Positions 16,801 to 52,079 of a stretch of DNA of 64,000 nucleotides are shown piece by piece (position 1 is the first letter of the stretch; each line of letters starts with the position of its first letter). This DNA comes from Mobula hypostoma (lineage: Eukaryota). The notes below the pieces were generated by a model. That model was not told where the DNA came from. It did not search any database and worked only from the letters and a program-made list of their open reading frames with translations. The translations under genes and the position numbers were made by a program. Location of the stretch: assembly GCF_963921235.1 (NCBI RefSeq), contig NC_086098.1, forward strand, positions 237,646,001 to 237,710,000, given 5' to 3'.

Positions 16801-19514
16801 CTGCCTCGACATTAAACCTGATTCGGATGTACATTACTTAATTGAGCAATCCAAGCCGTGACAAAAGTGCTGACGTGGCAATAATGGAATATCGGAGTAA
16901 GTGGCAGCACCATTACGTCAGTCGAAGCCCTGATCTAATGTTACTCTGCATTACTATTGCCAAAGCTCCACCGACTGCATATTTTTATATGCACTGAAAA
17001 CTCTTCAATTAAATTGATCCTTAAGTTCTCTGCAAATAAATTCAACAATTGTATTCCTCATTTAATTCGTGAGAAATCATTCAGTGATTATTACCTGGTA
17101 GGTTGATCTCGAAGGTGAAATCGTGAAGGGTCCAGAATGACATGGCCAACTGGATTGGAAATTGGCTTCCTAGAAGGAGCTAGAAGGGCTGTTACTGAGA
17201 CTGAAGACCTATGGCCAGTGGTGTGCTGCTGTTTCTCATAAAAAATGATTTGGATAATCAGGTAGGTGGCATGATTAGTAAATGCAAGAATGACGCTAAA
17301 GTTGGTAGTTTAACAGAGAGTGAAGAGGGCTGTCTTGGGCTGCCATAGGATCCAGATCAGTTCGGAAAGCGGGAAAAGGAATGGAAGATTAAACTTTACT
17401 GTGAAACACGGGAGTTTTGAAAAAGATCATGCTTCGATGTCATTCGCCATCTACATTGACATGTGTTCGGAATTTGCAGTGGTTTGTTGGCGCGACATTC
17501 AACAAAAGACGACAACATTCAACAATTATACAGAAATAAAAGGATTGCATGAAAATAAAATTAGAGGAAAGACATTGAATAAAAGGTGCATTAATACATA
17601 AATACTGGCATGCGTTTACGATATAAACAGCAATATAAATATTTGTTTAAAGGGCTGCCGAAAGGCTGCAGTGCTTGATGGCAGTAATACATAGAGGGGG
17701 CGGGGCTAAGTAGAATGGTTGATTGGATGAAATGCCTGGAGTGCAGGGACTTCTAAGGTGTTGTGAGGTTTTAGTTTTAATAGCCATATAGCCCTTTCCA
17801 GTGGGAGCTTTTTGAAAAGGCAGTTCTCTGGGTTAGTTGTGCTCACAATGATTTGTCGTACCCGCTTCTTGGTTCGGAAAAAAAGTTAGCTGGACCTAGG
17901 TTGTGTTGGTGGTGGTTGTGGTAAAATAGACATGGGGGCACAAGCCATAATTCTATATATGTGTCAACACAGTTTTAAATGCAAAGTTCAAAGTAAGTTA
18001 ATTAACAAAGCACAGACATGTTACTATGACCTGCCCTGAGGATCATTTTCATCCAGGTATTCACGGTACGTAATAGAAACACAGCAGAATTAATCTAAAA
18101 CTGCACACAAACAAATACGGACAAACAACCAATGTGCAAAAGAAAACCAACTGTGCCATAGAAAAACAACAGTACATAAGTATGTAAATAATATTGAAAT
18201 TTTGAGTTGTAGTGTCCCTGAACGTGCGACCATAGCTGGGGGAAGCATTTTAATCTATGGATTCAGGAGACTAATGGTTGAGCGGTAGGAGTTGGTCATG
18301 AACCTGAAGGCGTGGGACCCGAGATTTCAATACCTCATTCAAAAGCCAGAAGAAAGCATGGCGTGGATAATAGGGTTATTAATCATGATGGACGGTGTTT
18401 TCCTTCGACCGTCCTCCCGTGTTTAGTGGTGGGTTCAGTATCGTCCAGCTTGAATCTATAGAAGTTATCAAACTTTGACAACCCGAATCAGAGAGAGATC
18501 TGCAGATGGTGAAAAAGGACATGCTTGTCTCTCTCAGACGGGCCAAGCAGAAAATTGTGGTGAGTGGACGCATCTGGAATATTGGTTCATTTCTGATTGC
18601 CATACCATAGAAATAACCTGCTTCTTCAGTGGAGGGAGTGAATAAGAGATTCATCAGAATATAATTGAGGACTGGCGGGTTGAAGTTAAAAGAAGACACC
18701 GAAAATACTGGAAATGCTTTACCTAAAGCGATGGAGGTTCGGGGGCCACTCTGCGGGTGTTTATAAAATCTTGACTGACAAATTGGACTGGCATGTCATT
18801 TCCCAAGGTAAGGGAAGTAAAGCGAGACCACTAGGTCAAAGTGAAATAGGAAAGAGTTGAGGATGAATTGACGGTCATTTATTTAATACAGGACGGTCAG
18901 TACTCTATAGAGAACGACTTACCAGAAGATGAGGAAGAGGCGGGTACAGTTACAACATTCAGAAAACATTTGGATAGGTACATGGATAAGAAAGGTTTAG
19001 AATGAAATTAGGAAAGAGTAGGGAAAGGAGACTAGCCCAATAATGCATCAGAGTCAGCATGTACGAGCTGGGCCGAAAAGCCTTTTGCCGTGCTCCGTTA
19101 CTTTTATTAGTAGCTATCGCAGAATGTGGAGGTGCAAACGAAAGATTTGCGCCGTCTCATTCGGAATGTTTTAAAGCTTCTTAAGATAAACTTAGACAGT
19201 GACACGGATGAGGAATGTACACTTGTACAGGCCGAATGAATTACTTTCGTAGATTTATCAGCGTTCATTCCATTAGCTCAGCAGAACATTATGGTGGGGA
19301 GTGTCTGTTTCTGTACTGTACTGTGCTGTTCTTTATTTTCGAAATAAATCAAACCAAAAATAATTTATTCCTACTTCATTTCCTGCCGCGCGTGGTCTCA
19401 CTTCTGTAAAGTTCATCCGGCCGCTGTGTTGACTGAGATGGAAAGAGATTTAAGTGAACGACAGTGTTAAACCCAGAACCAGACAACAACGACAATAAAA
19501 ACAATCATAAGCAG

Positions 19515-19636
19515 TTAGAACGAATTTGGAATCTGACTGCGGGTTCCCACAGCGAATATATCCGTGAGGAGAAAGATAATCGCCACAAGAAAGCCGGCAT
19601 GATACAGTGAAAGGTAAACGTGCGTGGATGGGGCAT
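19515..19636 (-). CDS. Candidate orphan terminal TM exon with intramembrane Asp
   Basis: Strong acceptor cttcttttctcttgcag|. Phase-1 reading (D)APSTHVYLSLYHAGFLVAIIFLLTDIFAVGTRSQIPNSF*. Minus-strand AATAAA at 19364-19369 and 19332-19337. The other two frames are also open, so the coding call is uncertain. Confidence 0.4.
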
Positions 19637-20841
19637 CTGCAAGAGAAAAGAAGCGTTCGTATTTATATTCTCGAACATTTCTACCTCAGCATTTCCGACT
19701 CTAACGGTATACTTACAAAACGGGTACGCACGGTAGGAGGTTCGTAGCAGATCATAGTGTCACTAGATCCAGAAATAGATTTTAAAATATTTATGAAACA
19801 GTTAAAGATCGTCTACGTATCAAAAGAGAGAGGGAGGGGGAGGAAAGGAAGAGTGGGCGGATAATTAGATCAGGATCAGTCTTAATATCACTAATTCGTG
19901 TCGTGCAACAGTAAAGTCTATAAATCACGATAATAAACATATTTAAAAATAGATTTATTTTATAGATTAACAGTTTCTGGTGCAGAAAGAGGGCAAACCG
20001 TGAGGTAGTGTCAGGCAGTGATAACTAGATGAATACTATATACAGGCAGATTAATGTTCTGGAAGACAAAAGACCACCGCACTGAAAAATACAATGAAAC
20101 CATCCCAGTGTCAGGCACGGGGAAGTTTATGGTGCCCTTCTTCACCCACCGCGCTCTCCACAGTCAGATACCAAACACAGATCAATTCGAAAGACTCCAA
20201 CATGCACTGGAATGAAACGGTTGCAACCTATCTAGGGGTCATTGAAGGTCATTGCGAAAAACTTCAAAGAGATGTCAGAGGTAGGTATTTTTACACAGAG
20301 TGACGGCTGCGTAGAAGGCGCTGCCAGAGTTGGTGGCAAAGGCAGATACATTAGGGACCGTAAAGACGCTGTTAAATAGGCTCATGGATGATTGACAAAT
20401 GGAAGGCTCTATAAGCGGGAGGGTTAGAATAGGTTAAATCGTCAGCGCAACATCGTGAGTCGAGGGATCTGTACTGTGCTCTAGTGTCATACGTTCTGTC
20501 GCTAATCAGAGGAATACCCGACCAGCAACATTTTTTTTCCTTGAGTACTATTCAACGTTTCGTCTGCCTTGTCAGCGCCTATCAGCCCATCGGCTTATCA
20601 TTTTCCTTCCTCCTTTTCTGGCGAAACATGAGGTACCATTGTGTTCTGATGCCGTGGATAAAGAAGCCTCGTACACTTTGTGAAGTAGGTCTCCATCAAA
20701 AGTACGGTGAAAAGAAACGCAAGGGAAGAGAATGCCTGCGGAGTAAGGAAATATCCAGGAAACAGAAGAAAATGGTTTATTTCGGAGCTCTTAAGGGGTG
20801 ACAACTAGGAAAGGAAGAAATTCATCAGGATGCCATCTGAA

Positions 20842-21025
20842 NNNNNNNNNNNNNNNNNNNNNNNNNNNNNNNNNNNNNNNNNNNNNNNNNNNNNNNNNNN
20901 NNNNNNNNNNNNNNNNNNNNNNNNNNNNNNNNNNNNNNNNNNNNNNNNNNNNNNNNNNNNNNNNNNNNNNNNNNNNNNNNNNNNNNNNNNNNNNNNNNNN
21001 NNNNNNNNNNNNNNNNNNNNNNNNN
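20842..21025. other. Assembly gap (184 N)
   Basis: Run of N. Confidence 1.
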
Positions 21026-23844
21026 ATGCCTTGTCCGTTCACCAAATTATTAGGATTCCTAATTTCCATTGGGACCTGCGTCCTAAGGATTAAAATCGAA
21101 CATGGAGGATAGAGAGAAAAATAACGAGACAGAATAAAAAAGAAATGGAATTAGACATTGGACAGATAAAGTGTTTGGATGGGGGCGGAAATGTAATCAT
21201 CTCCAATAATATTTCAGTGATCCTCATTGATGGATTTCTCTGAGCTACGGAGGATGAGTAAATCCTCTGTCTTTGTTCCATAAGTCAATATAGGATACTT
21301 TATATGCATCAGGAGAGTCAGTTTGAGATCTGACGCGAAGCTATGATAATAATGTAACAAGCTGCACTTTGCTTACCCCGGAACAATTCCACATGAACAA
21401 ATCTGCTCCTAAGGCAGAGGGTTTCCAACATGGGGTCTACGGACCCGTTGGCTAATGGTAGGGGTCCATTGCATAATAAAAGCTTGGGAACCCCTGTCCT
21501 AAAGCAATCACTTCAATGATCTGGCGCAAGAATCGCTTCCCAACCAAATTCGATGCAGTGAAGACTAACCAGGAAGGAGATAGATCAGGACGCAGACCGT
21601 TGAAAAGCTCAATGTCGCAGTCACTACTAAATGTTTATCCAGTGATTGCGCAGATATCGGAGAGCATGGAAGGGAAGCGAAATGCAGGTCGGATACCATC
21701 ATTCTGTCTAGCATTTAAAGATACATCTGTGGAAAGTACCGCGCCGTGCCCATTCACGCTACAGGTTTCCTGTTTACGCTTTCAAGGTCAATGATTGCGT
21801 CAAGCTGCAAAGGGCGCAATGTGATAGATGAGCACGCGTGGAAAGTGTTGTGAGGACCAGGCTGCTTAAACCGAAGGCTAGAAACAGGTGGTGTCAGGTG
21901 ACATTCATTTGTTTCTCTCAACCTTGTGGCCCCTGTACTTTTTCTTTGTCACCCTTCAGTGAACTTCCGTTCTAACAGCAGCACTATGTTCTACATCCTT
22001 ATTCCCATTAAATACGGACCTGGTTGGCTTGGTACCTTGGAGCAATTTTCCGACACTAATCCAAGACATAGCTTTCAATTTATTATCTAAAAATCGATCC
22101 AGCTCGGTTTACATTTGAGCAGATACAAAGATCTGAATGCCATCCACGTAGAACATTCTGGAGATTTATTAACATTCTGGTTGAAGAAAATACCTCTCAT
22201 CTCATATCTGAAAGGGTAACCCTATTTTGAAAGTGTCGCCGTCATCCTAGGTACCTTCATCCAAGAGAATCAATAACCCTGCATCAACCCCGTCAGCCCA
22301 GAATGCAATTTGCAGGTCATGTGAGTTTACAACCAATTCTTCTAAGGACCGCAGACATTGACTTCTTCCTAATTTTAGCCTTGTAATCTATTCCTGATAC
22401 TAAAAGCCGGCAGGTTGTTTGTCGCCTAATTGTTCCTTGTACCTGTACATTAACTTTCAGTGATTTGTGTACAATTAACTCATTGTCCCCCTTGAAACCA
22501 ATATATTTCAGTCCTTGTTCATTTAAAATTCCTTTACTGCTCGTTGACTTACGTGCATGTTCTTGAACTTTTCCGCGCTACATTTCCTTTTCTTTGTTAC
22601 TTGGAAATTCGCTTATGGCATTGTTAAAATGATCTATTTCCGCTAATCAACCTTCTATTAATGCCAGATATATCATATAAACTTTAATAATTCTGTGTGA
22701 CATCTTATCAACTGTTTTCATAAAGTAAATACGTTAACTGTTTCGCCATTACCTCTTCTGTGAATTACAAAATCAAAATGTAGATTTGCCAAATATATTT
22801 CACTCTGCCAAATCCATAACTCTATCAAATCTAGTCATTATTTTTTTCCTGTTTCGACGTCTTTGCCATAATGTTCTGCTAACTATACATTGTATGTTAA
22901 TTCCTTTTGCTCCCCTTCTTTCAATGATGGAAATACATTTATAGTCGATGAATCTAAGGGATTGTCTAGGATGATGAAGATGATGACAACATCAGTACGT
23001 CTACGACATCCATAACTACCCTAGAAGAAAAAAAAATTCAGGATCTATATTGTATACATTTCTCTGACATTAAATGTATATCTGAATCCTTTGAAACCTT
23101 TAATTACGTAGTCTTAGGAATTTAACACTTCCTCTCTTGTCAATTTCACCAATAGTATATCGTTGCGGCAATCTCACTCGCTGATAGTTCTTCATCACAA
23201 TCTTGTACATCTCTGTGGCTTCCAAGAGAAATGGTTTCTTTTGCCTCTTGATGACAAACAAAATTGCATCGTTTAAATTGACAGTTTATAAATCAATTTA
23301 AATTGTCCTTTTTTTTGTTCTGTCTGAAATAATGCCAATGGAGTCTATAGAGACGAGATTCAAAATGGAGGTCTAATATTATCCACAACCAAGGCGTCAA
23401 CTAGTTCTCCGATAATCCAGTTATGCTGTTGTGTGGTGTGACAAGATATAAAATCAAACGGTCATTAGAAGATCAAATGTCGTAACATGGTCAAACGCTG
23501 AAACGCATGGTCAAACCCAATATGTTTTCTTAACAACCTTTCATCATTAGAAAGCATTTCTGACGTGTCTGTAGCGTCTCTGCAACGCTTTAGCTTTTAA
23601 CTGTAGTTAAAGTGAAGAATCTTTCGATTAAGTTCCAAACTAGCATACTGGGGCCATGCATTGAACGATACCTATTCACTAATTCCTCCACACCATCCCA
23701 GAGATACATGCGATTAAGAAACAGGTTTCTTATTACTTTTTTACTGTCGAATCTCTCAATTATTCTTCCTCAGAAAAGTACTTTAGATCAGAGGTGTGAC
23801 GGCAGATTGAGGACAACGCCTGTTTCGTAATATGCAAAATCGTC

Positions 23845-32360: not shown

Positions 32361-32763
32361 GAAGCAGTAGTTATGACAAGGGTTAGTTTTAATTGCAGCA
32401 AGCTGTACGTAATCAGGGATGGGACAACAGATTAACCGTTGTTCATTATTACCCATTGGTCAGAGTGAAGGAGCTCAGAGTTCGGCTTCGGATGGAGAGA
32501 TCTGGGAATATGACAAGCGCTCATGCAGCCGATCGATGGCGCTGTGAATCAATTGGACCACCTGCGTGCGGGCTTTCTTTCGAGTTTGCGGGTTTACGTC
32601 TCGGCGGGTCCGGTTTGTCGCTTTCGCACTGCAAGTTGCTCAGCTTGTGCCGTTACTCACACGACTCTTTACTACTCCGTTACTGTTCTTGCTCCGCACA
32701 TACGAAACAAGGTCTAAATCTGTCGCTTTTCATGGAGCATAATATTCACTCTGCCTTTCCAGA

Positions 32764-32796
32764 TCAGTTAGCATCAATCGCCAGCTGAGCGTAGAT
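32764..32796 (-). CDS. Exon 6: terminal cytoplasmic exon IYAQLAIDAN*
   Basis: Acceptor tcattcccttacag|; phase 0 matches exon 5. Carries a YxxL motif and a TGA stop. Minus-strand AATAAA lies about 400 nt downstream. Confidence 0.72.
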   Translation of the reverse strand: MYAQLAIDAN

Positions 32797-35700: not shown

Positions 35701-38700
35701 GGATTTTGGACTTGAGTCCGTATCTCTCTGAATGTAACGACACAGCTTGTTAGGGTGGTCAAAAGGCACATGGCATTCTTTCCTTGATCTGTCAAGGAAA
35801 TGTGTTCCAGACTCTAGAAGTAATATTGGAGCCTAATAGATCCTGCAGTTAGACTGCATCTGAAGTATTGCATTCAATTTTGGTCAGTTCCATTATAGGA
35901 AAGATGTTGGGGCTTTGGAAAAAATGCAGAAGTATTCTCGGATGCTGTCTGGAAAGTAGATCATCTGATATGAGGAGAGTTTGGCCCTACGCACGAATTC
36001 TTCGCATTGTAAATAATCCGTCCCCTTCCTCCAACAATCTTTCTTATCCCCTACCATCAGGCAGGTGGTACCGGAGCATTAAAACAAGAACTTTTAGGGT
36101 GGGAAACAACTTCCTCCTGTAGGCCATAAGACTACGAAGCTCCCTGCCACCACCCACGTCTCAACATGTATGAAGTGCCAATAGCGTTGTACTGTTTATC
36201 TTTGACTTCTGCCGTATGCCTCGTATTATTTGTTAATTTATTTGTGGTTATTGTGATTACATTACTTAATGTGTGGTGTGTAAGTTATATGTACTGCGTT
36301 GTGCAACTTGGTCCGGAGGACCGTTGTTCCGCATGGCGATATACATGATAATAAACTGAACTTGAACTTGAACGTAAGCAAACTTGAGTTGTTTACTCTG
36401 GAAAATCGGAGATTGAGGGGCTATTTGACATCGATTTACATACTATGAGAGGCACAGATAGAAAAGGCAGCCAGTATCGCTTTTCCACATTGTTGAAACG
36501 TGGCATGTGCTTAAGTTGAACTGGGGTAAGTTCAAAGGAGATGTGCGGGTCCCTTTTTAACACAGAGAATGGTAGAAGCCCGGAATTCGCTGCCGAAGGT
36601 GTTGGTGGAGGCAAATGCGATAGACCCGTTCCAGAGGCTTTCCGATAGGCACATAGATTTGCTAGAAATTGAAGAATATGGGCATTCTTCAAGCGGGAGT
36701 GATTAATGTAGTTGGGTATTTGATTACTAATTCAATTAGCTCAATAGCACATCGTCGACTGAAGGACGAGTCCCCGTGTTGTACTATTCTAAGCGCAAAG
36801 CAATTATCTGCTTATAAATGGCATTACTGGGTACAGGAGTGGAACCCGCTGTGGTATTCTGCTGTTGTAGCCCATTCACTTCAAGTTTGGATGCTTTATC
36901 CTCTCAGAGATGGTCTTCTGACACCAAAAACATAACATGTGATTATTTAAGTTACTTTCACTTTCCTGTCAGCTTGAACCAGTCTGTCCATTCTCCTCTA
37001 ACCTCTCTCATTAACAATTTGGTTATGACCACATCACTGCCACTCTCTGGATTTTGCCTGTTTGCTTGTTTGTTTGTATTTTTTTGCACCAATCTTTGTA
37101 AGCTCTGGAGACTGGTATGCCTGAAAACGCCAGGATATCGCATTAACGAGCAGGTTTTACACGTGTACTTGAAATTGAGTGTACTTACATCACGTTCTCG
37201 ATCCTTTCGCCGGGTGTTGGTGATTTTGCTTGCCGTTTCTCCTTTTACTGATTGAAAGAGATGTTTAGAAGTGAGCTTTTCTTCAAAGGGATTATTCACC
37301 TTTTGGCGAGAAGTTCAGGTCATGATAATGTTAAGGCCAGCACGTTACCTGGTTCGCGTTCTTTCCGACACTTCCTAATAGCCACCGTGGACGCCCCTAC
37401 AGCAAGGAACACGAGTGTCGCCGCCAGGCCAATTGTAAGCATATGACAGAGTTCGACCTGCACGCTGTCTGAAGGACGTAAAAACAATTTTCAATTGAAA
37501 GTAATTTACCATTAGTTCCAATCTGCATTTGTTGCCTATGGATCCTAAATACTCAACAGATTGAACATAAAATGAAGGAATCATTAAAATCAGAATCAGG
37601 CATTTGTCCTGAGACTTGCTGTTTTGCTGTGGCAGTAAATTGCAATATTCAAACTATAAGTTACAATAAGAAGTATATGTATGTGTCTGCTTGTCTGCAA
37701 ATTAAGTAAGTAGTGCAAAATGAGAGGGAAATGGTGAGGTAGTGTTCATGGGTTAATTGACCATTCAGATGTCTGATGGTGGAGGAGAAGAAGCTGATCC
37801 TAAAACTTTGAGTGTGTGTTTTCAAACACTTATTGTTCCATCCTGAGAGCAGAAATGCGGAAAGGGCATGTCCTGGGTGATGGGGTCCATACTGATAGAT
37901 GCCCCATTTTGCAGCATGACCTTTTGATGGTGTCCTGGATATGAGGACACTGTTGCCCATGATGGAGCTAGATGAGCTTACAACTGATATATTTAAGGCG
38001 GAGGTTGATGGTATCTCGATTAGCAGGGACGTCAGAGGTGTCGGGGAAAGGGAGGAGAACAGGGCTGAGGGGAATAGTGAAAAGACGACGATGGAATAGC
38101 GGAGAAGACTCGATGAGCTTGTGGTCTTATGCTGTAATCTCTTATTCCTTCTGAAAATTGTGACCTTAGATCTATCCAAATAGCTCCCTGGTCGTCACAG
38201 GAACTGGCCATCCGACCCAACTAACCCATACTGGTACTTGAGACCCCGGGAGCATTTACATGTTCGTCCACCTCTGCTCTAGACTACTCCAGGTTGATAC
38301 CGATAACTTTAACGGGCCTCACTACAACACTTCTTTCAAGTTTGGGGCGTGTGGTCTCTGATTATCCTTCGAGTGCTGGCCAACGTCATTGGCTGTGCGT
38401 CGTTCTGCCTCAGATATGCTTGCTCCATTCTGCTGTAAAGGTAGCTCGTGACTCTAGGGACACGTTTTCTATCCAGCTCTCGAAGTGTGTGCACTTTTCC
38501 GCGTAATCATGTGGCATTCCACCACATATTGCCGCTGCCCCTCACTTAGGAAGAGCTTGCTGGTAAATATGTGGCAACAAAGAATCAAAGCAAGTATGAT
38601 TTCCGTTTCTATGCTGTAAGATTAAAGGGGATACAAATGTCAGAAAGCTGGTACAGGGTGTCTCGGGACTGACTCGGCCAATAGCAAGAACGAGATTGAG

Positions 38701-41700
38701 GATTGTCAGAGTCTGAGGGGATGTCACAGAAAGTGATCTGATTGGTCACTTGCCTTTGCAACCATTGTGTCTGGGGTCTAATTTGGAATGTAATAAATCT
38801 TGGAATTTTGTAGCAATTAGTATCAGGTTTATTATTATCACATAAACCGAGATGCAGTGAAAAGTTTGCCATCCAGACAGATCATATGGCACACGAAACA
38901 CCGAGTAGCACAAAAGGAGAAGCTGGTGAATGAAGTATTGCAGTTACAAAGAAGGCGCAGTGTGGGTGAAAACAAGATGCAAGAGCCATGACGACTAGAG
39001 TTTGAGATGAATAGATCACTGAACGGAAATCTGTCCAGCACAGTACAGGCATAACGATGTTGTGCCGACCTTTTAACTCAAAAATAAGTTCATCCTTCCC
39101 TTCTACATTGTCCTCCATTTTCCTTTCATCCATGTACATATCTGACAATCGTTTATATCGTACAAGAGGTCCGTTCAAACGGCCCATAGAGGTATACATC
39201 CTGGCGACGGCGGTTACTTGGTGTGAGACAGAAATTTAGCTAACTTTTGAGGTTATAGCTAATTTGATGGGTAAAGGCAAACTGGAACCGACAGGGTCCC
39301 GCATGTTCAGAAATATTCCATCTGTCTCAGCTAGCTCACAAGTTAAGCGCGCCCAACGCTGGGAAGTGGTATATTGGCCTGGAGAGGGGAATGGTTTACC
39401 AACCGAGAGTCGGCGGTGAATGAGTCATTTTCAGTCATTTGAACTACTTATGTATCGTGATGAACTGAATAAAGGACTGCGTATGTGTAACCGGATTCCC
39501 CTATTATATAAATTCTAAGGAGACTAATGGGAAATGTATATGGCCGTGCAATAACATAGCGGTGAGCGAAACGACGTAAAGTGCCGGTTGAAAGATCGTG
39601 GCTCGATTCCTGCTGCTGTAATAAAGACATTGTACATTCTCCAGGTAAAAACGTGGGATTCCTCCGGGTGCTCCGGTTTGCCCTCACATTCCAAGGACGG
39701 AGGGTTTGAGTTAGCAAGTTACAGGCATACTATGCAGCCGCCGGAAGCGTGGCGGCATTTGCGGGCTACCCCAGCACACTTTCGCTGAGTTGAATTGACG
39801 CAAAAGACGCAGTTCACTATATTTTTCGATGTACAGGTGACAATTTAATCCAAAATTTATCGGGAATCATATGTCGGGAGACGAGTAATTTCAAGGACTC
39901 TACAACTCAGTATTATTTTTGACTTATTATTTGTACGATTTGACTTCGTTTGTACATCGTTTGTTTGTCAGTCCTCGTTATTTATAGCCTTTCACAAATT
40001 CTGTTGTATTTCTTTCTTGTTCTACTGTGAATGTCTCTGATCTCAGTGGAGTATATCGTGACATATACTTCCTTTGATAATAAATGTACTTTGTATTTTG
40101 AAGAAACAAAAATGAATTATTCTGAATAAAAAGTCAATGATAATTAATCTGAATCTGATACTGATTCTGAACATTTCCCTTAACAGAGTGGCCAAACCAA
40201 GAGGTGCCCATTTAAAGTAAGTTTTGAGTGATGATGATAAAGTTAGTGAGGGAAAGAGCTTCACCCGGAGAGCGTTGGGAGTTTCAATGATCGGTGGGGA
40301 GGGAGGAGAAACTCTGCTCACATTTCCGTAGTGTTTAAATGCGACAGTAGAGCCGTTAGGGACACGGAGACAGCGCTAGAGAGCGGGATTTAGCTGGATA
40401 CTAGGCCTAAACACAGAGGGCCGAATAGCCTCGCTTCATAAAGCTGATGGGAATCACTAGCTTCTACGATACCTTTCTGAGCGGAGACACTGTCACTGAC
40501 CAGGTGTCCAGTGGCGCAAGTGCAGACGACGCCGCTACGCCATCTTTCCGCCGGGATCTGGAAGCGGCTGCTAACGCTGTATCCTCCGTCCGGATCAAAT
40601 ATCGGGGGATCAACGAGACCTTCTCTGGTATTTCCCGATATGTTCCATCGGATGTTCATGGAATGGGAAGACACGCCTCTCACCAAACACATCAAGGTCA
40701 CCAGTTGCATCCGGGGAATTTCATCCGCTTGCGGTGCTAACAGGTATATCGTGGGAGGCTGGGCTGAATGCGGAAAACACAACAACGCTGTATTAATTGG
40801 ATAGACACATTTTAATCTCGGTTTCAGAAACTGGTTATTCTGGCATCTTCTCCGTGCTGGTGGTCATGTACATATCTGTGCCAATTCTAGTTTACAAGGC
40901 CCTCTGTCTGTGATAGTTCGTCTACATAACTGAGCGAGTAGCTGCATCGCTACCCCTCAGGGTGTGAGATCCCAACGCTCCTCGGAGAGAAACATCCTTT
41001 TTCAAGCCTTCTCTAAGTCTGTCACCCTTAGTCTGTATAGGTTTATCGATACATTTACCATCGCCACAACAGCATAGCGTTTAGCGCGATGCTATTACAT
41101 CTCTGGGAGTGGGAGTTTGGATTTCAATCCCGGATTCCACTGTAAGCAGTTTGTCGCCGTGAAACGCCATTCCCCGTTTAAAGCGTGGGTTTCCTCCGGA
41201 TGCTCCGGTTTCCCCGCACAGTCCAAAATCGTAAGGGTTAATAGGGTTAATTGATCATTGTATATTGTCCCCTGATTAAGCTCAGCTAATGTTCCACATT
41301 TCTATCAGCTTACCGTCTCCACCGCAATGAAAGCAAAGTAACGTACATAACCGATCCTCGCAAACGAAACGACATCGTTGTGATAGAGACCCACAGCGGG
41401 GAAGCAGACAATACAGCTCATCGTATCGACGAGTGGGCACCAATCCACATTAATCCCATCTTCCTACACTTAGCTAAGACCCTTCAGTATAACTCATCAA
41501 TGAACACATCTAGACACCTCTTAGATGCTGTCAGCAAATCTGCTGCAACCATTCTAGGACATACTCACAGTTGGTCCTGTTCAGATCACCCCGAAACTCT
41601 TCTGTCTTATACTAAATCTATGCTCTCTTGTTTGTCCACCTCAATTATGTGGAAGGGCCTCCTGCTGTTAACCTCGTAATATGAAGTTGGTCTATGACCT

Positions 41701-44700
41701 CCCTACCTCTCTATTCAATAACCTGACTAATGAAAGGCCAATATCCATTTGCCGTCATAATCACAGTATGTACGTGCGATGCCACCTTGAAGGATCACTG
41801 GATTTGTAATCCAGGGTCCTTTTGTTCCTCAACTTCCATGTTTCCCATATCCTTCCCTCATTAGTCCTCCCAAAACGCATCCCCTCACGTTATCCCGGGT
41901 TAACATTTATAATTCGTTTCACCAACACTTCAGTATCAACCCTTGGACAAAGACTAACTTTTACACTAACCGTACAATCCACTATTTCGCCCTTCGTTGT
42001 TTTCTGCACAAATTTACTGATCCTGCTTCTTATATAAAAATCTAAACTGTTCAAGAATATTTCAAAGAACAAAGTTCCACTACCTATTCTCGGGGAACAC
42101 CGCTAGTAGCAGGCATCCAACCTTCCCTTGCCCCTTGTTTCCAGTCTAATGTGGAATCGTGTGACAAATTTCCCTGGTTGCTGTCTATGTGGGATCTTGT
42201 CAGCGGCCTCAATGAAGTGCATCTAAAACATACATTGATTTTACGGTCTAAATCATGGACTTGGAGACTTCTTCAAGAATTTCGATCAGATTGCTCCGAC
42301 ATGCTCAGCTGTTAACACAGCCAGCTTGGCTGTCTTTGATTAGACCTTGTCACTCCAAGATATTATTAAACCTGTCTCTCGGAGTTCAGTCTTTTAAGAT
42401 TGCTACGACTGTTGTTCGATTCATAGGTCTATAATTGCCAATGCTTTCCCTGGAACTCTAATCCCTACTTTCCAGGAATCTCACATGTACCCAGCGAGTA
42501 TTTACAATATCGCACTTAAAGACCCAGCAATCCCACAGTTTGCTTGCCGCAGAAGCTTAGGATAGATCCGGTGATTTTCGACTTTTAAAGCCGCTACGGC
42601 TTCAACTACATGTTCTTCATTTATTGGGATTTACACCAAAAGTTCACCTTTCCCTTCACTGAAGCCTCCATCTACAAGGTGCGCTTCCTTTGTAAATTCT
42701 GATGAAGCGTACTCATTTACGACCACTGCAATATCTTCCAGCTCCAAAGCCAGATTCGGCCGTTGCTCATAATGGACTCCAGTATTTCCTTGGATGATCT
42801 TTCGCTCTTAATACACTTTTAATAAACTTTTATCTGCTTGCCAGTGATATTTTGTGACTTCTATTAATCTGCCTTTTAAGCATCGCCTTGCATTTTTATA
42901 CCAGGAAGGGCTTCGCTCGTCTTTAACTTTCTATACATACCATCTGCCTCATTTTTTAATCTTTATCCATCCTCAAAAACCTTGTCGTCCATAGATCTCT
43001 GAGATTATCACCTCTACCTTTTACCCTTACTGGAACATGTTGGCTCTGAGCTCTTACTATTTATCCTTCCATGCACATACCGACTTACCAGCAAGCGGGT
43101 CCTCCGATTCAACTCTATCCTGCTCCTGTCTAATACCAACGAACATGGATTTGCCCAGTTTACGGGGTTTATTTCTGGTTCATGCCAACCTTTATTTCTC
43201 ATAACCACTTGAAATATGTGCATTCACTGCCACGATTCCAAATCAGCTCCCCAGCTGACACTTCTTCAAACTGACGAGCCACAAAGTCGTGTATCTGTGG
43301 AATTCATTGCCACAGGGGGCTACGAAGGCCAAGTCATTGGGAATACTTAAAGCGGAGCTTGATAGGATCTTAATTAGTAAGGGCGTCAAAGGTCACGGGG
43401 AGAAGGCAGGAAAATGGGGCTGAGAGGGAAAAAATCTGCAGTGAGAAATTGGCTCAGAAAACTCGATGGGACGAAAGGCGTAACACTGCTGAGATAATTT
43501 ATGGTCTTGTAATCAATTTCATTCACTTCTTGACGATCCAGTTCTATACCTCATTGGTAACCTACACACGAAATTAAAAACCTCTCTTGACCGGATCTTA
43601 AAAATCCTCTCCAGCGCAATCGCGCCCCTGCTATAGTTTAACGTCCAGGCTGCAATCTTACGGCACAACTCCAATTTTGGTTTGATTAATGTGTCACACA
43701 GTTTGAATATACACACTTCCTTGCTCTTATATTCTATTCCGTGGCAATCAAAGACAAGTATTTGGTATGTTTGTTTCACCACCTTCTCTCCAAGTCGCCT
43801 TTTGTACTGCCGTTCATTATATCTGTTCCCGAACTTCCAAAGCACTTCGCTCAAATTTCTCAGATTTAAACTTCATCTGCCATTGTTCTGACCACCTTTA
43901 GGGGAGGCACGGTTGCGAAGCGGTTATGGCAACGCTTTACTGAGCCAATTGTAAAACAATGGTTGAATCGCCGTCGCTATCTGTAAGGGGTTAATACGAG
44001 AACGCGTAGATTTCCTCCGAGTACTCCGATTCCCTCCCACATCCTAACGATGTGAAAATTAACTAGTAAATGGGCGGCGTGGGATCGTTGGACTGAAAGA
44101 GACTGATGCCGTGCTGCATCTCTAAATTAAATTGAGAATTAACCTCTTCAGTATTGCTCTGTAGCTCAAACCTAATCTCCACACTTCCAACAGTACCATA
44201 AATTCCCGTCTCATTTGTGGACGTATTAATTATAATCTCAACGTACCCTCTGGGCCCCAGCAAACGCCATCATGTACAGTCCTAAGCCCAGCTACGAAAG
44301 GAATAAGGTTGGGCATGGGATTCCCAACCCCATCCCGTAAAAATCCTGTGCTATAGTAACGCAAACAAAAGCTCCCTGCGAGAAGAAGGACCTTCGAAAA
44401 TTAGCTATACACTGGGACAATTTGAAAGTGGCCCATGACCGAAGACTCTGGTGAGCTGCTTTCAGCTCCTATGCTCAGTAGGGGTGATGGACTTTTAAAC
44501 AGGGTCCCAGCATCAGCAGAAATGTTGAACTTGTTTCGGCGGGTTACCTGTGACCACTAGATTGGATCCATTGCCGAACTCGCCGATGAGCTGATCTGCG
44601 CAGAAGTAGATCCCAGAATCATTTCGCTGGACGTTTTCAATCACCAGGGAGTAAGTGGCTGATTTTACGTCCACCTGCCCCGAGAACCGCCCCTCCGCTT

Positions 44701-45619
44701 CCACGAATCTGCCCACACTGTAAACGAACTGCAGATGCCTTTGGTTGCTCCGTTTATACCAGTTTATCATAGCATGCGCACCCCGATCCCGGCTACAATT
44801 CAGGATGGCCTGACCTCCGACACGGACGGTCTGGATCGGCGGAGACTGGAACAAGGCGGCCTGAGACACACAAACTAAAAAAAGGAAGATTTAATCACAG
44901 ATGTGGTCCTTTCACGGTTGACACAGCGACTTCAGCCTCGCGCCATCTTTTTTATAAACTGAGACTTCGGAACACAGAAAGAGCAGTTTACTCAGTCTCT
45001 GCAGTTAATTGTTCTACCCGCTTCTCTAATCCCATAATTCTTATCTGAATCCCTTTCTTAAAACTCCGTTGGAAATCATTCCAGTTTTACATTCCCTGGT
45101 GGGGTAGGAATTAATTTACCGCGCGTTTTCCCGAGTAATCTACCCTCCGAATTCTACCTCTGCCATCCGTGATTATTGACTATCTGTGATTAAATAAAAA
45201 TATCGACATAGTATATAGAACAGTACAGCACAGTTACGGGCCCTTTTGTGCCCAACCAATTGAATTAGTAATCAGGTGGTAATCTGAACTCTTCTGCCGA
45301 CACAATGTCAGTTTTCCCTGCATCAATGGGCCTATCTAAACGTATTTTAAAAGTCCTAAAATGTCTGCTGCTATCACACCCCAGGGCAATCCCCGCACCA
45401 CCATTATCTACCACTCACATTTCCTTCGAATCTACCCCCTTTCAAATTAAATCCATGCCCTCCGGCATTAGAAGTCACTTATTTATTCTACCAAATTCCT
45501 TCAGTTAATTAACGATCAGCATTCCCTCTAAACTAGCTGCCTAAGCTCTTCCCTGCTTGAAATTCGGGTCGTTCACCTTGCAGTAAGTGAAAGAGTGCGA
45601 AGACCGCGAAGCATCTCAT
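32764..45619 (-). CDS. Non-rearranging antigen-receptor-like IgSF receptor (leader-VJ-C1-TM-cytoplasmic YxxL), 6 coding exons, 290 aa
   Basis: Exons 45619-45577, 44874-44548, 40763-40473, 37468-37349, 37247-37189 and 32796-32764. All introns are GT-AG, with phases 1,1,1,1,0. The 873 nt join into one ORF: MRCFAVFALFHLLQVCVSQA-ALFQSPP...FGNGSNLVVT-AQPPTIYLLAP...SVSAQK-DSVQVELCHMLTIGLAATLVFLAVGASTVAIRKCRKEREP-VKGETASKITNTRRKDRERD-IYAQLAIDAN*. Confidence 0.85.
33281..33430 (+). repeat. ~30-bp minisatellite, about 5 units
   Basis: Repeated tgacccctccagcccgtatacccctctgtg-like units in the last intron of the receptor gene. Confidence 0.8.
33920..34403 (+). mobile_element. Non-LTR retroposon 3' end with (TAATC)n tail
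   Basis: Ends with aataaaagaggactgcgtgtcctca followed by taatc repeats, and sits inside a CR1 endonuclease remnant. Family not identified. Confidence 0.5.
34655..36000 (+). mobile_element. Degenerate CR1 RT fragment
   Basis: Remnants resembling KAFDKVP, SKFADDT and the downstream CR1 C-terminus. Confidence 0.7.
37189..37247 (-). CDS. Exon 5: first cytoplasmic exon
   Basis: Follows a 101-nt intron after the TM exon. Acceptor catctctttcaatcag|, donor GAT|GTAAGT, phase 1-0. Translates as (V)KGETASKITNTRRKDRERD. Confidence 0.85.
37349..37468 (-). CDS. Exon 4: connecting peptide plus transmembrane segment
   Basis: Acceptor tttttacgtccttcag|, donor CCAG|GTAACG, phase 1-1. Translates as (D)SVQVELCHMLTIGLAATLVFLAVGASTVAIRKCRKEREP: a hydrophobic span followed by a basic stop-transfer. 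Confidence 0.88.
39560..39800 (+). mobile_element. tRNA-derived V-SINE-like element (HE1-type core)
   Basis: B-box-like ggctcgattcc followed by the core cctccgggtgctccggtttgccctcacattcc. Confidence 0.55.
40473..40763 (-). CDS. Exon 3: C1-set Ig constant domain
   Basis: Acceptor ttgtgttttccgcattcag|, donor AAAG|GTATCG. Motifs PPTIYLLAP, VTLMCLVRG, IRW, DGGYSVSSRFQI and W..G..CTC..GH are C1-set hallmarks. Confidence 0.93.
41070..41280 (+). mobile_element. tRNA-derived V-SINE-like element
   Basis: Core gcgtgggtttcctccggatgctccggtttccccgcacagtcc. Confidence 0.6.
41380..43870 (-). mobile_element. Cluster of degenerate CR1 fragments in the V-C1 intron
   Basis: Mostly reverse CR1 RT, endonuclease and 3'-end remnants, with no Ig motifs. 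Confidence 0.55.
43905..44130 (+). mobile_element. tRNA-derived V-SINE-like element
   Basis: A/B-box-like head and core tttcctccgagtactccgattccctcccacatcc. Confidence 0.5.
44548..44874 (-). CDS. Exon 2: V-set Ig domain with germline-joined J-like G strand
   Basis: Acceptor tcttccttttttttag|, donor ACAG|GTAACC. Contains the B-strand Cys (AILNC), C-strand Trp (INWYK), YSLVI, DSGIYFC and FGNGSNLVVT (FGxG). Confidence 0.95.
45577..45619 (-). CDS. Exon 1: signal peptide MRCFAVFALFHLLQ
   Basis: ATG at 45619, hydrophobic h-region, phase-1 donor CAAG|GTGAAC. G+TT joins the V exon in frame. An in-frame upstream ATG is present at 45670. Confidence 0.8.
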
Positions 45620-47969: not shown

Positions 47970-49925
47970 ACCGCGTAACTATTAGCACGCCAAAGAGAGT
48001 AAGGGAGCTATAGGCAAGTAGTCACACTGGAGCCTCAGGAGTCAGATATGTGGGTAAAAGAGGGAAGGACAAGAGTCCGATACTAGAGACTGCCCCTGTG
48101 GCTGTCCCCCTTAACAATACGTATTCCTGTTTGAGTACTGTTGGTGGGGTGGGAGGGATGGCCTACCTCGGGGAAGCAACAGTGGCCGCGCCTCTGGCAC
48201 AGATTCTGGCCCTGTGGCTCAGAAGGGTAGGGAAAGGAAGAAGGCAGCAGTAATAGGTGACTCTATAGCTAGGAGGTCAGACAGGCGATTCTGTGGACGC
48301 AGGAAAGAAACACGGATGGTAGTTTGCCTCCCAGGGGCCAGAGTCCGGGAGCTTTCTGATCGCGTCCACGATATGCTGAAGTTGGAAGGTGAACCGCCAG
48401 AGGTCGTTGTACATATTGGTACCAACAACATAGATAGGAAAAGGGAGGAGGCTCTGAAAACAGACCACAGGGAGATAGGAAGAAAGTTGAGAAGCAGGAT
48501 CTCAAAGGTAGTAATCTCGTGATTACTGCCTGTGCCAAGCGACAGTAAGTATAGGAATAGAATGAGGTGGAGGATAAATGCGTGGCTGAGGGATTGGAGC
48601 AGGCGGCATAGATTCTGTTTTCTGTATCATTGGGATCTAGTTTGGGACAGGCATGCCTTGTACAAAAAAGACGGGTTGCACTTGATTCACAAACGGGTCA
48701 ATATCCTGGCAGGGAGGTTTGCTCTTGGGGTGAGTTTAAACCGGAATTGTTGGGGGGTAGGAACCGAACAGTAAAGACGGAGGATGAGGCGATTGGCTCA
48801 CAAATGGAGAAAGCTTGGAGACACTGCGAGGGGGACGAAAAGCAGGTGATAGAGCAAGGATACGCCCAGACTGATGGTTTGAGATGTGTCTATTTTAATG
48901 CAAGTAGCATCGTGAACAAAGCGGATTGACTTAGTGGGTGGATCAGTACTTGGAGCGATAATGTTTTGAACATTACAGAGACTTGGATTGCTCAGGGGTA
49001 GGAATGGTTACTTACAGTGCCAGCTTTAAATGTTTCAGAAAGGACAGGGTGAGAGGCAAAAGAGGTAGAGGCGTGGCACTGCTGATCAGAGATAGTGTCA
49101 CGGCTGCAGAAAATGATGAAGTCATAGAGGGATTGTCTACTGAGTCTCTCTGGGTGGAAGGTAGAAACAGGAAGGGGCCAATAACTCTACTGGATGTTTT
49201 TAATAGACCACCCAATAGTAACAGGGACATCGAGGAGCAGATAGGGAGACATATTCTGGAAAGGTGTAATAATAACACGGTTGTCGTGGAGGGAGATTTT
49301 ACCTTCCCAAACATTGATTGCTATCACCTCGAGGAAGGGGTTTGGATGGGGTGGAGTTTGTTAGATGTGCTCAGGACGGTTTTCTGGCACAGTATGTGAT
49401 TGAGCATAAAAGAGAGGAGGCTGTACTTGATCTGGTATTGGGAAATGAACCTGGTCAGGTGTCAGGTCTCTCAGTGGGAGAGCATTTTGGAGATAGTGAT
49501 CAAAATTCTATCTCCTTTACCACAGCAATAGAGACGGATAGGAACAGAAAAGTTAGGAAAGCGTTTAATTGGAGTAAGGAGAAATATGAAGCTATCAAGG
49601 TGAAACTTGGAAGCAAAAATCGGGAACAGATTTTCTCGGGTAAATGTACTGCAGAAATGTGGCAAATGTTCAGTGGATATTTGCTGGGCGTTCTGCATAG
49701 TTACGTTCCAGTGAGACAGGGAAAGGATGGTAGAGCAGAGGAACCATGGTGTACAAACGCTGTTGAAAATCTAGTCAAGAAGAAAAGAAAAGCTTATGAA
49801 AGTTTCGAAAAACTAGGTAATGATGGAGATCTACAAGAATATAAGGCTGGCAGGAAGGAGCTTAAGAATGGATTTAGGAGAGCCAGAAAAGTCCATGAGA
49901 AGCCCTTGGCGAGCAGGATTAAAGA
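47970..49925 (+). mobile_element. CR1 LINE 5' part: SGNH-esterase ORF1 and AP-endonuclease start of ORF2, 3'-truncated
   Basis: AAVIGDS...VCLPGA...VVVHIGTNN (ORF1), LRCVYFNASSIVNK, and VVEGDFTFPNID...LDLVLGNEP (APE), with frameshifts. Confidence 0.85.
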
Positions 49926-52079
49926 AACCCCGAAGACAAAATTATGGCGACCGGATTTTTAAAGAGGTGCTTTTGTCACCAGAACCCGCTGCAGTCAATC
50001 CTGCAGTGTGCACTGGCTGGGATGGAGGAGGGACATTGCACCTTTAAGCAACTGCCTCCTCCACCAGTAACTCCGAGAAAAGCAACTGGCCCCGCCTTTA
50101 CATTTCCTCCAATCAGCCCTCTTTCAGAAGGTGACAAGTGAAGGAAAGAAAGAAAGAGAGAGAGAGAGAGAGAACTGAATCGGGAGTAAACATGCTATCC
50201 TCATTTCATCTCGCCTGTCACTTCCGAACCAAGGGGATACTGCTGGTTTTCATTTGTTCCCATGAATTTAGCGCAGTCTCAACAAATCAGGGATAAAGAA
50301 CTGGTACAATCCAAGCTGCAGGAGTAGATGCTGAGAGACGCACTGAAGTTTGGAGCAGGCAGCACAGGGCTCGGAATGGGAGGAGAATAGTGTAGGGTTC
50401 TTACGCCCCTGGAGAGAGAGGGGCCGATTTGGGAGAGGAAGCCAGTCAATTATGGTGGCACTTTACCACCCTCAGGGGGCCACATGAGTACGAGCCATCT
50501 CTGCACCACTGCTGAGAAAGTGCTTCATTTGTTGCTGGAAGTGGAGGAGAGGGAAGCGGGCGGACAGGGCACCGACCTCTCCGAGGGAAGAGCAGTAAGT
50601 ACAGCGCTACATATTGCCAGAGTGGGGGGACTGACTTGCAGAAAAAGGTGTGATGAGGGAGAGCCTTGCTGTCAGACGGTGTTCCGAAGGCAGTCCTAGG
50701 CACTCCGCTGTCCATCAGCCAGCGCCAAGGGCAGCTGGGAGTCACAACACTGAAGGGGAAAATGGCACCTGAGTTCATCTGTGAGATCTTGCTATGATTA
50801 GTGCTGCTGCTACACTTAGTGCGTTATAAGACCATAAGACATAGGAGAATAATGAGGCCGCTCCGCCACTCCATCTTTCTTCAACCCCATTTCCCTGCCT
50901 TCTTTGATTCCCAGCCTAATCAAAAATCATCCTCCGCTTTAAATATACGCAATGACTTGGCCTCCAACGGCGTCTGCGGCAATTAATTCCAAATATTTAT
51001 CACCCTCTGGCTGAAGAAATTCCCCCCATTTCTGTTCTAAATGGACGTCCCTCTATTCTGAGGCTGTGCACTCTTATTCTAGACTCGCCCACAATGGAGA
51101 AGAAATGAGGAATGGAATCAGCAGGGAATCCTGCTTTAAGATGACTATGATGCCCAAAAGAAGCTGTAGGTTTACTTTGCATTACAGAATATTTTTCCTT
51201 ATCTAAGAAAGGATGTGCTGCCATTGGAGAACCTGCAGAGGAGGTTTACGAGAATGTGCCTGGGTCCGATAGATTAATCTATGAGGAGTGTTTGATGGCT
51301 ATGGGCTTGTACTCGCTGGAGTTTAGAATAATAAGACTGGGCGGGTGGAACCTATCTAATATTGAAAGGCCTAAATAGAGTGTTGGTAAAGAGTATATTT
51401 CCTACAGTAAGGGAACTAGGAATAGAGGCACAGACACAGAATAGAAGAATTCCAATTTTGAACAGAGATGATGAGGAATTATTTCAGTCAGAAGGTGGTG
51501 AATCTGTGGAATTCATTGCCACAGACATTGTGTAAGCCAGGTCATTGGATATGTTTAGAGCAGAGATTGGTCTGTTTTTGATTAGTGAGGGCTTCAAAGG
51601 TTACAGGAGAATGGGGTTGAGAAGGATAATAAATCAACGATGACGGAATGGTGGAGCAGACCCGATGGAAAGAATGGCCTGACTCTGCTCCTCTGTCGTA
51701 TGATCTTATGGTTTATTTTAGGAAAACATAATCAGCTTGGGATCAGGAAAGAAATTTGTGCTGATGGTGATTGTGGAAGAGATGTTGCTGTCAATCCGAA
51801 CTGACCGGTGTCTGCCAGTAAGGAAATCCAGGATCCAGTTGCAAGGGCTGCACTCATCTATTTGTTAGGTTTCGCTATATTTCCCTGACAGGTAATAAAT
51901 TTAATTAAAACAGCGATACAGGCATTTATCTCTTAATTTTATCATATTAGCCCTCCAAATCTACTCGGCCTTCTGGTGGCGTTGTTCTTCATTTCAGATA
52001 TTTTTTCCTTCAAAATAGGTATTACCAATCTGGAGATCATCAACACTGTCTGCAATCCCAGTAACCCTTCTATACTGCA

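Follow-up and report, generated by a model that had tools for sequence, protein, structure and literature searches.

A devil-ray membrane receptor gene with a germline-fused VJ exon and its place in the non-rearranging VJ-C1-TM family

Introduction

In the genome of the devil ray Mobula hypostoma, there is an exon in which an immunoglobulin (Ig) V domain runs without interruption into a J-like strand, and the question is whether this joined state came from rearrangement or is the ordinary form of the gene. The exon lies in a stretch of 64,000 nucleotides (RefSeq assembly GCF_963921235.1, contig NC_086098.1, positions 237,646,001 to 237,710,000 of the forward strand), which is called the window here; exon coordinates are positions in it. 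A first-pass annotation, made from the letters of the window, had described a J-like FGNG strand fused to V in the germline, with a J-type phase-1 donor and no recombination signal sequence (RSS) around the exon. It had proposed either a primordial unsplit VJ exon or a germline-joined rearranged gene, and it had favoured an innate-type receptor. Our results indicate that FGNG very probably forms the G strand in a V domain not made by somatic rearrangement. The gene belongs to a family of VJ, C1-set and transmembrane (TM) build, the VJ-C1-TM family, in which the fusion is older than the split between cartilaginous and bony vertebrates.

Results

Structure of the gene and conservation of the J-like strand

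The gene is on the minus strand and has six exons. Its coding sequence (873 nt, 290 aa) keeps an uninterrupted frame, and every splice site is canonical. The exons, with the two segments of the VJ exon that are central to the question, are listed below.

45577-45619, minus strand: leader exon; ATG at 45619-45617, 14 codons (MRCFAVFALFHLLQ) plus 1 base, phase 1; donor GT at 45576-45575
44548-44874, minus strand: VJ exon; 327 nt, entered and left in phase 1; last part of the signal peptide, then the full V-set domain, including the J-like G strand
44579-44599, minus strand: loop resembling complementarity-determining region 3 (CDR3), ADQLIGE; 7 residues, from the YFC cysteine to the F of FGNG
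44548-44578, minus strand: J-like G strand, FGNGSNLVVT plus 1 base; FGxG bulge motif and NGS N-glycosylation sequon
40473-40763, minus strand: C1-set exon; 291 nt, phase 1 to phase 1; PF07654, E 8.3e-10 (Pfam)
37349-37468, minus strand: connecting peptide and TM exon; connecting peptide DSVQVELC with a lone Cys, uncharged TM HMLTIGLAATLVFLAVGASTVAI, then RKCRKEREP
37189-37247, minus strand: cytoplasmic exon 1; VKGETASKITNTRRKDRERD, phase 0 end; tblastn matches to P0170, P0167 and P0164; canonical AG/GT
32764-32796, minus strand: cytoplasmic exon 2; IYAQLAIDAN and stop TGA at 32766-32764; the sole tyrosine motif; 100% identical to the C-terminus of P0170

The segment 44548-44620 on the minus strand encodes DSGIYFC-ADQLIGE-FGNGSNLVVT and the first base of a split codon, and it is followed directly by GT at 44547-44546. 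The VJ exon was recognized as a V-set domain (PF07686, E 9.5e-16, Pfam), and its best matches among solved structures were antibody kappa/lambda V domains and T-cell receptor (TCR) alpha V domains. In an alignment of 40 family sequences, the F, G and G of FGxG were each at least 90% conserved. Furthermore, of 147 V domains from the family, 138 had xGxG and 99 had FGNG[ST]. Because the FGxG motif is conserved across the family V domains, it is not a chance occurrence. The length of the CDR3-like loop is constant within each lineage: 7 residues in the batoid A-type copies, 8-9 in birds and crocodilians, and 11 in sharks and turtles.

The same alignment gave a side observation on the bulge. The sequon N116-G-S is encoded at 44564-44572, and in about 90% of the aligned members, Asn occupies the x position of FGxG, with G and then S or T after it. 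Judged by this pattern, the J-like bulge carries a conserved predicted N-glycosylation sequon.

Search for recombination signals

To scan for RSS, we used the consensus rather than an information-content model: CAC was fixed, at most 1 mismatch in the heptamer and at most 2 in the nonamer were allowed, and the spacer was 11-13 or 22-24. The scan found 0 strict sites in the whole 64 kb window, compared with 1.15 expected by chance. Near the VJ exon, it gave only loose matches at chance level, and none of them abuts the V or J coding end. In addition, a single open frame runs through the 21 nt from the YFC cysteine to the FGNG phenylalanine, which leaves no room for an RSS between V and J.

Transcripts and loop variants

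The RNA evidence came from four public runs in the form of Logan contigs, and these runs are taken as RNA because the contigs hold spliced forms. The joint between the leader and VJ exons (45577/44874) was present in three runs (X1, X2 and X3), and that between the VJ and C1 exons (44548/40763) in all four, both as GT..AG on the minus strand. At the leader exon, contigs extend in the 5′ direction to about 45677. One contig of run X1 was identical to the window over 44609-44864, without any difference; thus, either this copy or one identical to it is expressed. The remaining contigs diverge from the window gene by about 3-10%. We conclude that this is an intact, transcribed gene of Mobula hypostoma that encodes a type I membrane receptor.

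The divergent contigs included two variants of the loop. One changes I to Y (44585-44587) and D to A (44594-44595), which gives AAQLYGE, the germline loop of P0167 from the same species. The other changes I to F (44587 alone), which gives ADQLFGE, the loop of P0170, the orthologue from the manta Mobula birostris. In the Logan contigs of the four runs, only substitutions were found in the CDR3-like loop, and no insertion or deletion was seen. These differences fit germline paralogues and orthologues and not junctional diversity, and they are not a proof of invariance.

These results bear out three statements of the first-pass annotation. The J-like strand is fused to V in a germline exon, as the translation, the PF07686 match, the conserved FGxG and the 7-residue loop agree. 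No strict RSS adjoins the exon in the consensus scan, and the phase-1 donor at 44548 is spliced to the C1 exon in contigs of all four runs.

Two other observations were made in the contigs. In run X2, one contig passes from the VJ exon into a 71-nt piece of the VJ-C1 intron (42648-42718) and then into C1, with 31 unmatched letters at one joint; this piece is either an alternative cassette exon or the product of a paralogue in a related species. Meanwhile, four intronic stretches (41024-41385, 43196-43557, 44282-44462 and 45187-45367) were covered in each of the four runs at a contig depth between the hundreds and the thousands; presumably, these are interspersed repeats with transcripts from other parts of the genome.

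Family membership and species distribution

When the V exon was used as a query in an exhaustive phmmer search, single-domain matches were found with 72-76% identity in stingray and sawfish and with 40-49% identity in skates, sharks, lungfish and turtle. The matched proteins had a common build: a VJ domain with FGNG(S/T), a C1 domain with a B strand of LMCLV type, a Cys before the TM, and a tail ending in (T/S)xYAxL. Two profile searches returned 143 and 83 proteins from many sharks and rays, lungfish, turtles, crocodilians, lizards and many birds. All major elasmobranch orders hold members, and turtles are strongly expanded. The family matches listed had E values from 1e-136 to 1e-33, and the next match beyond the family, in the second search, had 6.5e-9. 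All family proteins bear automatic names only, such as 'uncharacterized', 'immunoglobulin kappa light chain-like' and 'Ig heavy chain Mem5-like'. The identities to the window protein were as follows.

P0170, M. birostris: 94.5%
P0167, M. hypostoma: 85.5%
P0164, Hypanus: 81%
P0004, Pristis: 67%
Members from shark, turtle, bird and lungfish, and the batoid B-type copy P0049 (M. hypostoma): 34-46%

The turtle, bird and lungfish members taken alone had 34-39% identity. The window gene has the VJ exon, the C1-set domain, the connecting-peptide Cys, the TM and the tail YAxL of this family, with significant homology over its full length. Judging by these shared features, it is one paralogue of an old and little-studied family of non-rearranging VJ-C1-TM genes that extends from elasmobranchs to birds, and a fused J strand is normal for such genes.

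Age of the fusion

In the green turtle Chelonia mydas, three family genes stand in tandem on one strand within 27 kb (locus L001, 1-27242), which fits the large turtle expansion among the protein matches. One of them, P0185, repeats the six-exon order of the window gene: a leader of 14 codons, VJ, C1, connecting peptide with TM, and two tail exons. Its V domain is contiguous through FGNGTRLIVT in one exon, and its last tail exon begins just before the tyrosine. Since ray and turtle share both the fused VJ exon and the six-exon layout, the fusion predates the divergence of cartilaginous and bony vertebrates; as far as these gene layouts can tell, it is at least as old as their shared ancestor.

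Phylogeny of the V domain

The phylogenetic tree was built from 49 V domains of the family, to which we added the 62 best-scoring ones from outside it in a library of 1.8 billion proteins. The family V domains grouped together (SH-aLRT 89), with an elasmobranch clade and a sauropsid clade (96 and 97, both starred); two long-branch goby sequences were the only others placed within the family. Ig kappa/lambda-type and TCR-type V segments, shark SIRP-like V and teleost NITR-like V formed separate groups. In the approximately unbiased (AU) test, the constraint that the family is one clade was not rejected (p-AU 0.66). The Ig/TCR-like proteins retrieved as candidates for a V plus C1 outgroup were single-chain variable fragment (scFv) constructs or V-V gene models, without C1.

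Membrane anchor, tail and structural model

The connecting peptide and TM exon was assigned from its sequence, its canonical splice sites and 95% identity to P0170 in tblastn, together with a helix at 221-257 in the structural model. The TM HMLTIGLAATLVFLAVGASTVAI contains no Lys, Arg, Asp or Glu, and the 39-residue tail has a single YAQL; both the uncharged TM and the tyrosine tail named in the first-pass annotation are therefore confirmed. Together with the germline VJ exon and the lack of RSS, they support its preference for an innate-type receptor, and the gene looks non-rearranging as well. The core YAxL of the tail is conserved family-wide. In sharks, batoid B-type copies and sauropsids, the tail reads (T/S/V)xYAx(L/V), which fits an immunoreceptor tyrosine-based inhibitory or switch motif (ITIM/ITSM). 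The sequence upstream of the leader exon yielded no Ig-type octamer.

At the extreme C-terminus, P0167 runs past IYAQLAID into TDLERQSEYY, and the same string is encoded at 32739-32768 of the window in another frame, just beyond the stop. Therefore, species or paralogues differ by a frameshift there.

The AlphaFold2 model was made for the orthologue P0170 with the 40-sequence family alignment. Its mean predicted local distance difference test (pLDDT) was 80, and about 90 in both Ig domains, with G-strand segments at 113-115 and 118-123 flanking the GxG. Foldseek matched V and C1 of this model to antibody light chains and TCR beta chains, with alignments of about 215 columns, E values near 1e-16 and 21-29% identity. 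Meanwhile, the best sequence matches of the C1 exon in PDB were Ig CH3-type domains (7.9e-25), and UrIg2 (9dmx_A) was matched with E 1.1e-16. Among the batoid A-type copies, variation concentrates at CDR1, CDR2 and CDR3 positions, and the frameworks are conserved.

Other features of the window

Downstream of the gene and on the same strand, there is a remnant or partial copy of a B-type paralogue (15432-21612), with four recognizable parts.

21571-21612, minus strand: leader-like exon
19545-19649, minus strand: connecting peptide and TM exon; conserved Cys replaced by Tyr, Asp within the TM
19375-19431, minus strand: cytoplasmic exon
15432-15503, minus strand: tail piece

The V and C1 exons of this remnant were not found, and an assembly gap (20842-21025) separates its leader from its TM exon. 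In addition, the plus-strand region 560-2925 has a TM-like frame at 728-940, which gave no match to the TM exon of the VJ-C1-TM gene in tblastn. The window is rich in repeats; the long plus-strand frames at 10009-12740 and 48115-49959 resemble, by eye, retrotransposon protease/integrase/reverse transcriptase and long interspersed nuclear element (LINE) endonuclease/reverse transcriptase.

Discussion

The joined VJ exon of the devil ray is best understood as a germline exon of a family in which V and the J-like strand normally come joined, and we hold this reading with high confidence. Joined-VJ domains with a J-like GxG bulge are known in the non-rearranging CD8, CD79, NKp30, SIRP, NITR and PRARP (PMC11599192). 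Thus, the fused strand, which the first-pass annotation had presented as unusual, is indeed present and is less unusual than was implied. The window gene belongs among such joined-VJ receptors of the immunoglobulin superfamily (IgSF), for its V-set domain and FGxG G strand lie in one exon whose boundaries are used in RNA.

PRARP is of particular relevance here, for in architecture and distribution it is the closest of the described families. It is said to have been described by Fu and colleagues in 2019 (J Immunol 202:1992) as a VJ-C1-TM gene with a tyrosine-motif tail, reportedly found in birds and other non-mammals and absent from mammals. Both PRARP and the window gene are non-rearranging IgSF genes with a joined VJ domain. 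The VJ-C1-TM family is probably PRARP, a likeness drawn from the reported architecture and distribution and not from sequence. PRARP has also been cited as a VJ gene in the major histocompatibility complex (MHC) (PMC10751288).

Several points weigh against our reading or parts of it. The Logan contigs drop rare variants, so low-level junctional diversity could go undetected. The V tree contained no V sequences of elasmobranch Ig light chains, TCR, UrIg and NKp30. When the elasmobranch members were joined to the Ig/TCR-type V group, the AU test on V alone gave no rejection (p-AU 0.52). The evidence of the V tree is divided: the family stands apart from Ig/TCR-type V, and such an affinity of its elasmobranch members is unrejected. 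Because the V-only signal is weak, the deep placement rests on features of the whole gene and not on the V tree. The name PRARP was on no family match listed, and no chicken protein was among the bird matches listed. A two-copy complex prediction for the P0170 ectodomain (residues 20-228) scored 0.00, which speaks neither for nor against pairing. Finally, the tail of the batoid A-type copies is DIYAQL (EIYAQL in Narcine), whose Asp at Y-2 lies outside the ITIM consensus (S/I/V/L)xYxx(I/V/L). With D-I-Y-A-Q-L in its tail, the window gene was not accepted as an ITIM-bearing inhibitory receptor; this tail still qualifies as a YxxL/YxxPhi motif. From the motifs, an inhibitory role seems plausible for the family and is uncertain for the window copy.

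Other origins of the joined exon have to be considered. The gene could be a recent, shark-style germline-joined Ig light-chain or TCR cluster gene. Its relatives are automatically annotated as 'immunoglobulin kappa/lambda light chain-like', and among solved structures, antibody light chains and TCR chains match it best. With these chains it shares the V-set plus C1-set fold over about 215 columns, a split leader, an FGxG J strand and a phase-1 J donor, and with the TCR connecting peptide a membrane-proximal Cys. However, it differs from them in having no RSS, no sign of somatic joining in the contigs, no TM charge for CD3 and a tail tyrosine of its own, with only about 21-29% identity to solved Ig/TCR chains. 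A TCR chain was rejected since HMLTIGLAATLVFLAVGASTVAI lacks a basic residue for CD3 assembly and there is no RSS between V and J; an elasmobranch germline-joined Ig light chain was rejected because TM and tail exons are present and the identity is low. Furthermore, members occur in all major elasmobranch orders, and the layout in turtle rules out such a recent joining, so that we give this origin practically no credence. It is therefore only this half of the first-pass proposal, germline joining in the shark manner, that is given up. A far earlier event is harder to separate. RSS-bearing split V and J could have been joined by RAG in germ cells before the cartilaginous/bony split, which would have founded the family. 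Germline joining has been documented for elasmobranch Ig clusters (PMC2193156, PMC2192082), the J-like strand and phase-1 donor are exactly of J type, and the unrejected V-only affinity to rearranging-type V is compatible with it. Against this, there is no RSS remnant and no trace of a junction, CDR3 length is fixed per lineage, many non-rearranging IgSF genes share the VJ form (PMC11599192), and the gene's own TM and tail are common to ray through turtle. We consider this ancient rejoining unlikely, and the data themselves fit a never-split exon and one rejoined before the gnathostome radiation alike.

Membership in a lineage already known from elasmobranchs was the other alternative. UrIg and UrIg2 are non-rearranging elasmobranch genes with a single-exon VJ, a split leader and C1-type domains (PMC12227049), all of which recur in the window gene, and its C1 exon matches UrIg2. 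However, UrIg2 has 9-11 C domains (PMC12227049), whereas there is a single C1 here. Ig CH3-type domains also score better than UrIg2 9dmx_A (7.9e-25 against 1.1e-16); therefore, the C1 is no closer to UrIg2. In addition, the VJ-C1-TM family has an ITIM-like tail family-wide and members in tetrapods, whereas UrIg/UrIg2 are described in elasmobranchs (PMC12227049). We rejected this membership on the C1 count and scores, and regard it as very improbable. NKp30, CD8, CD79b, SIRP and NITR resemble the window gene in their germline V domain with a J-like GxG bulge, and they have innate or co-receptor roles. However, NKp30, CD8, CD79b and NITR have no C1 domain and SIRP has two, compared with one in the window gene. 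Membership in NKp30, NITR or SIRP was rejected for this difference, and SIRP-like and NITR-like V form separate groups in the tree.

Under the preferred reading, that of a germline VJ exon in an old non-rearranging family, the protein would be a type I surface receptor with a signal peptide, a VJ domain, one C1-set domain, a membrane-proximal Cys, an uncharged TM and a 39-residue tail with YAQL. The germline V domain would serve as the ligand-binding face. The gene itself sits in a devil-ray cluster of several tandem paralogues. The FGxG bulge may have been kept for structural reasons, namely the geometry of the G strand and possibly V-V pairing. Together with this conserved bulge, the membrane-proximal Cys suggests a disulphide-linked dimer, which might be a homodimer or a pair with a linked B-type paralogue. 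Diversity of recognition would come from germline paralogues that differ mostly at CDR1, CDR2 and CDR3; because variation is centred on these positions, the tandem copies may amount to a small repertoire in the germline. With its uncharged TM, the protein is less likely to signal through adaptors with immunoreceptor tyrosine-based activation motifs (ITAM) that are recruited by a charged TM, and signalling or trafficking would more likely pass through the tail tyrosine.

A bolder idea is that the VJ-C1-TM genes, beside UrIg/UrIg2 and NKp30 and distinct from them, form a third line of non-rearranging relatives of the antigen-receptor precursor that has survived in elasmobranchs, and that the ray tandem cluster, with its differing CDRs, is a germline repertoire of paired A- and B-type chains. 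We put this forward tentatively and think it rather doubtful.

The single copy in the window adds no new principle, and the family has already been machine-annotated in related species. A VJ-C1-TM gene is of moderate interest for the origin of antigen receptors. Genes with an unsplit VJ exon and C1 are natural candidates for the target of the RAG transposon, and work on UrIg/UrIg2 (PMC12227049) and on the MHC of cartilaginous fish (PMC10751288) turns on unsplit VJ-C1 genes. Since one layout has been kept from ray to turtle, the VJ-C1-TM family can be used as a comparison set for the question of the RAG target.

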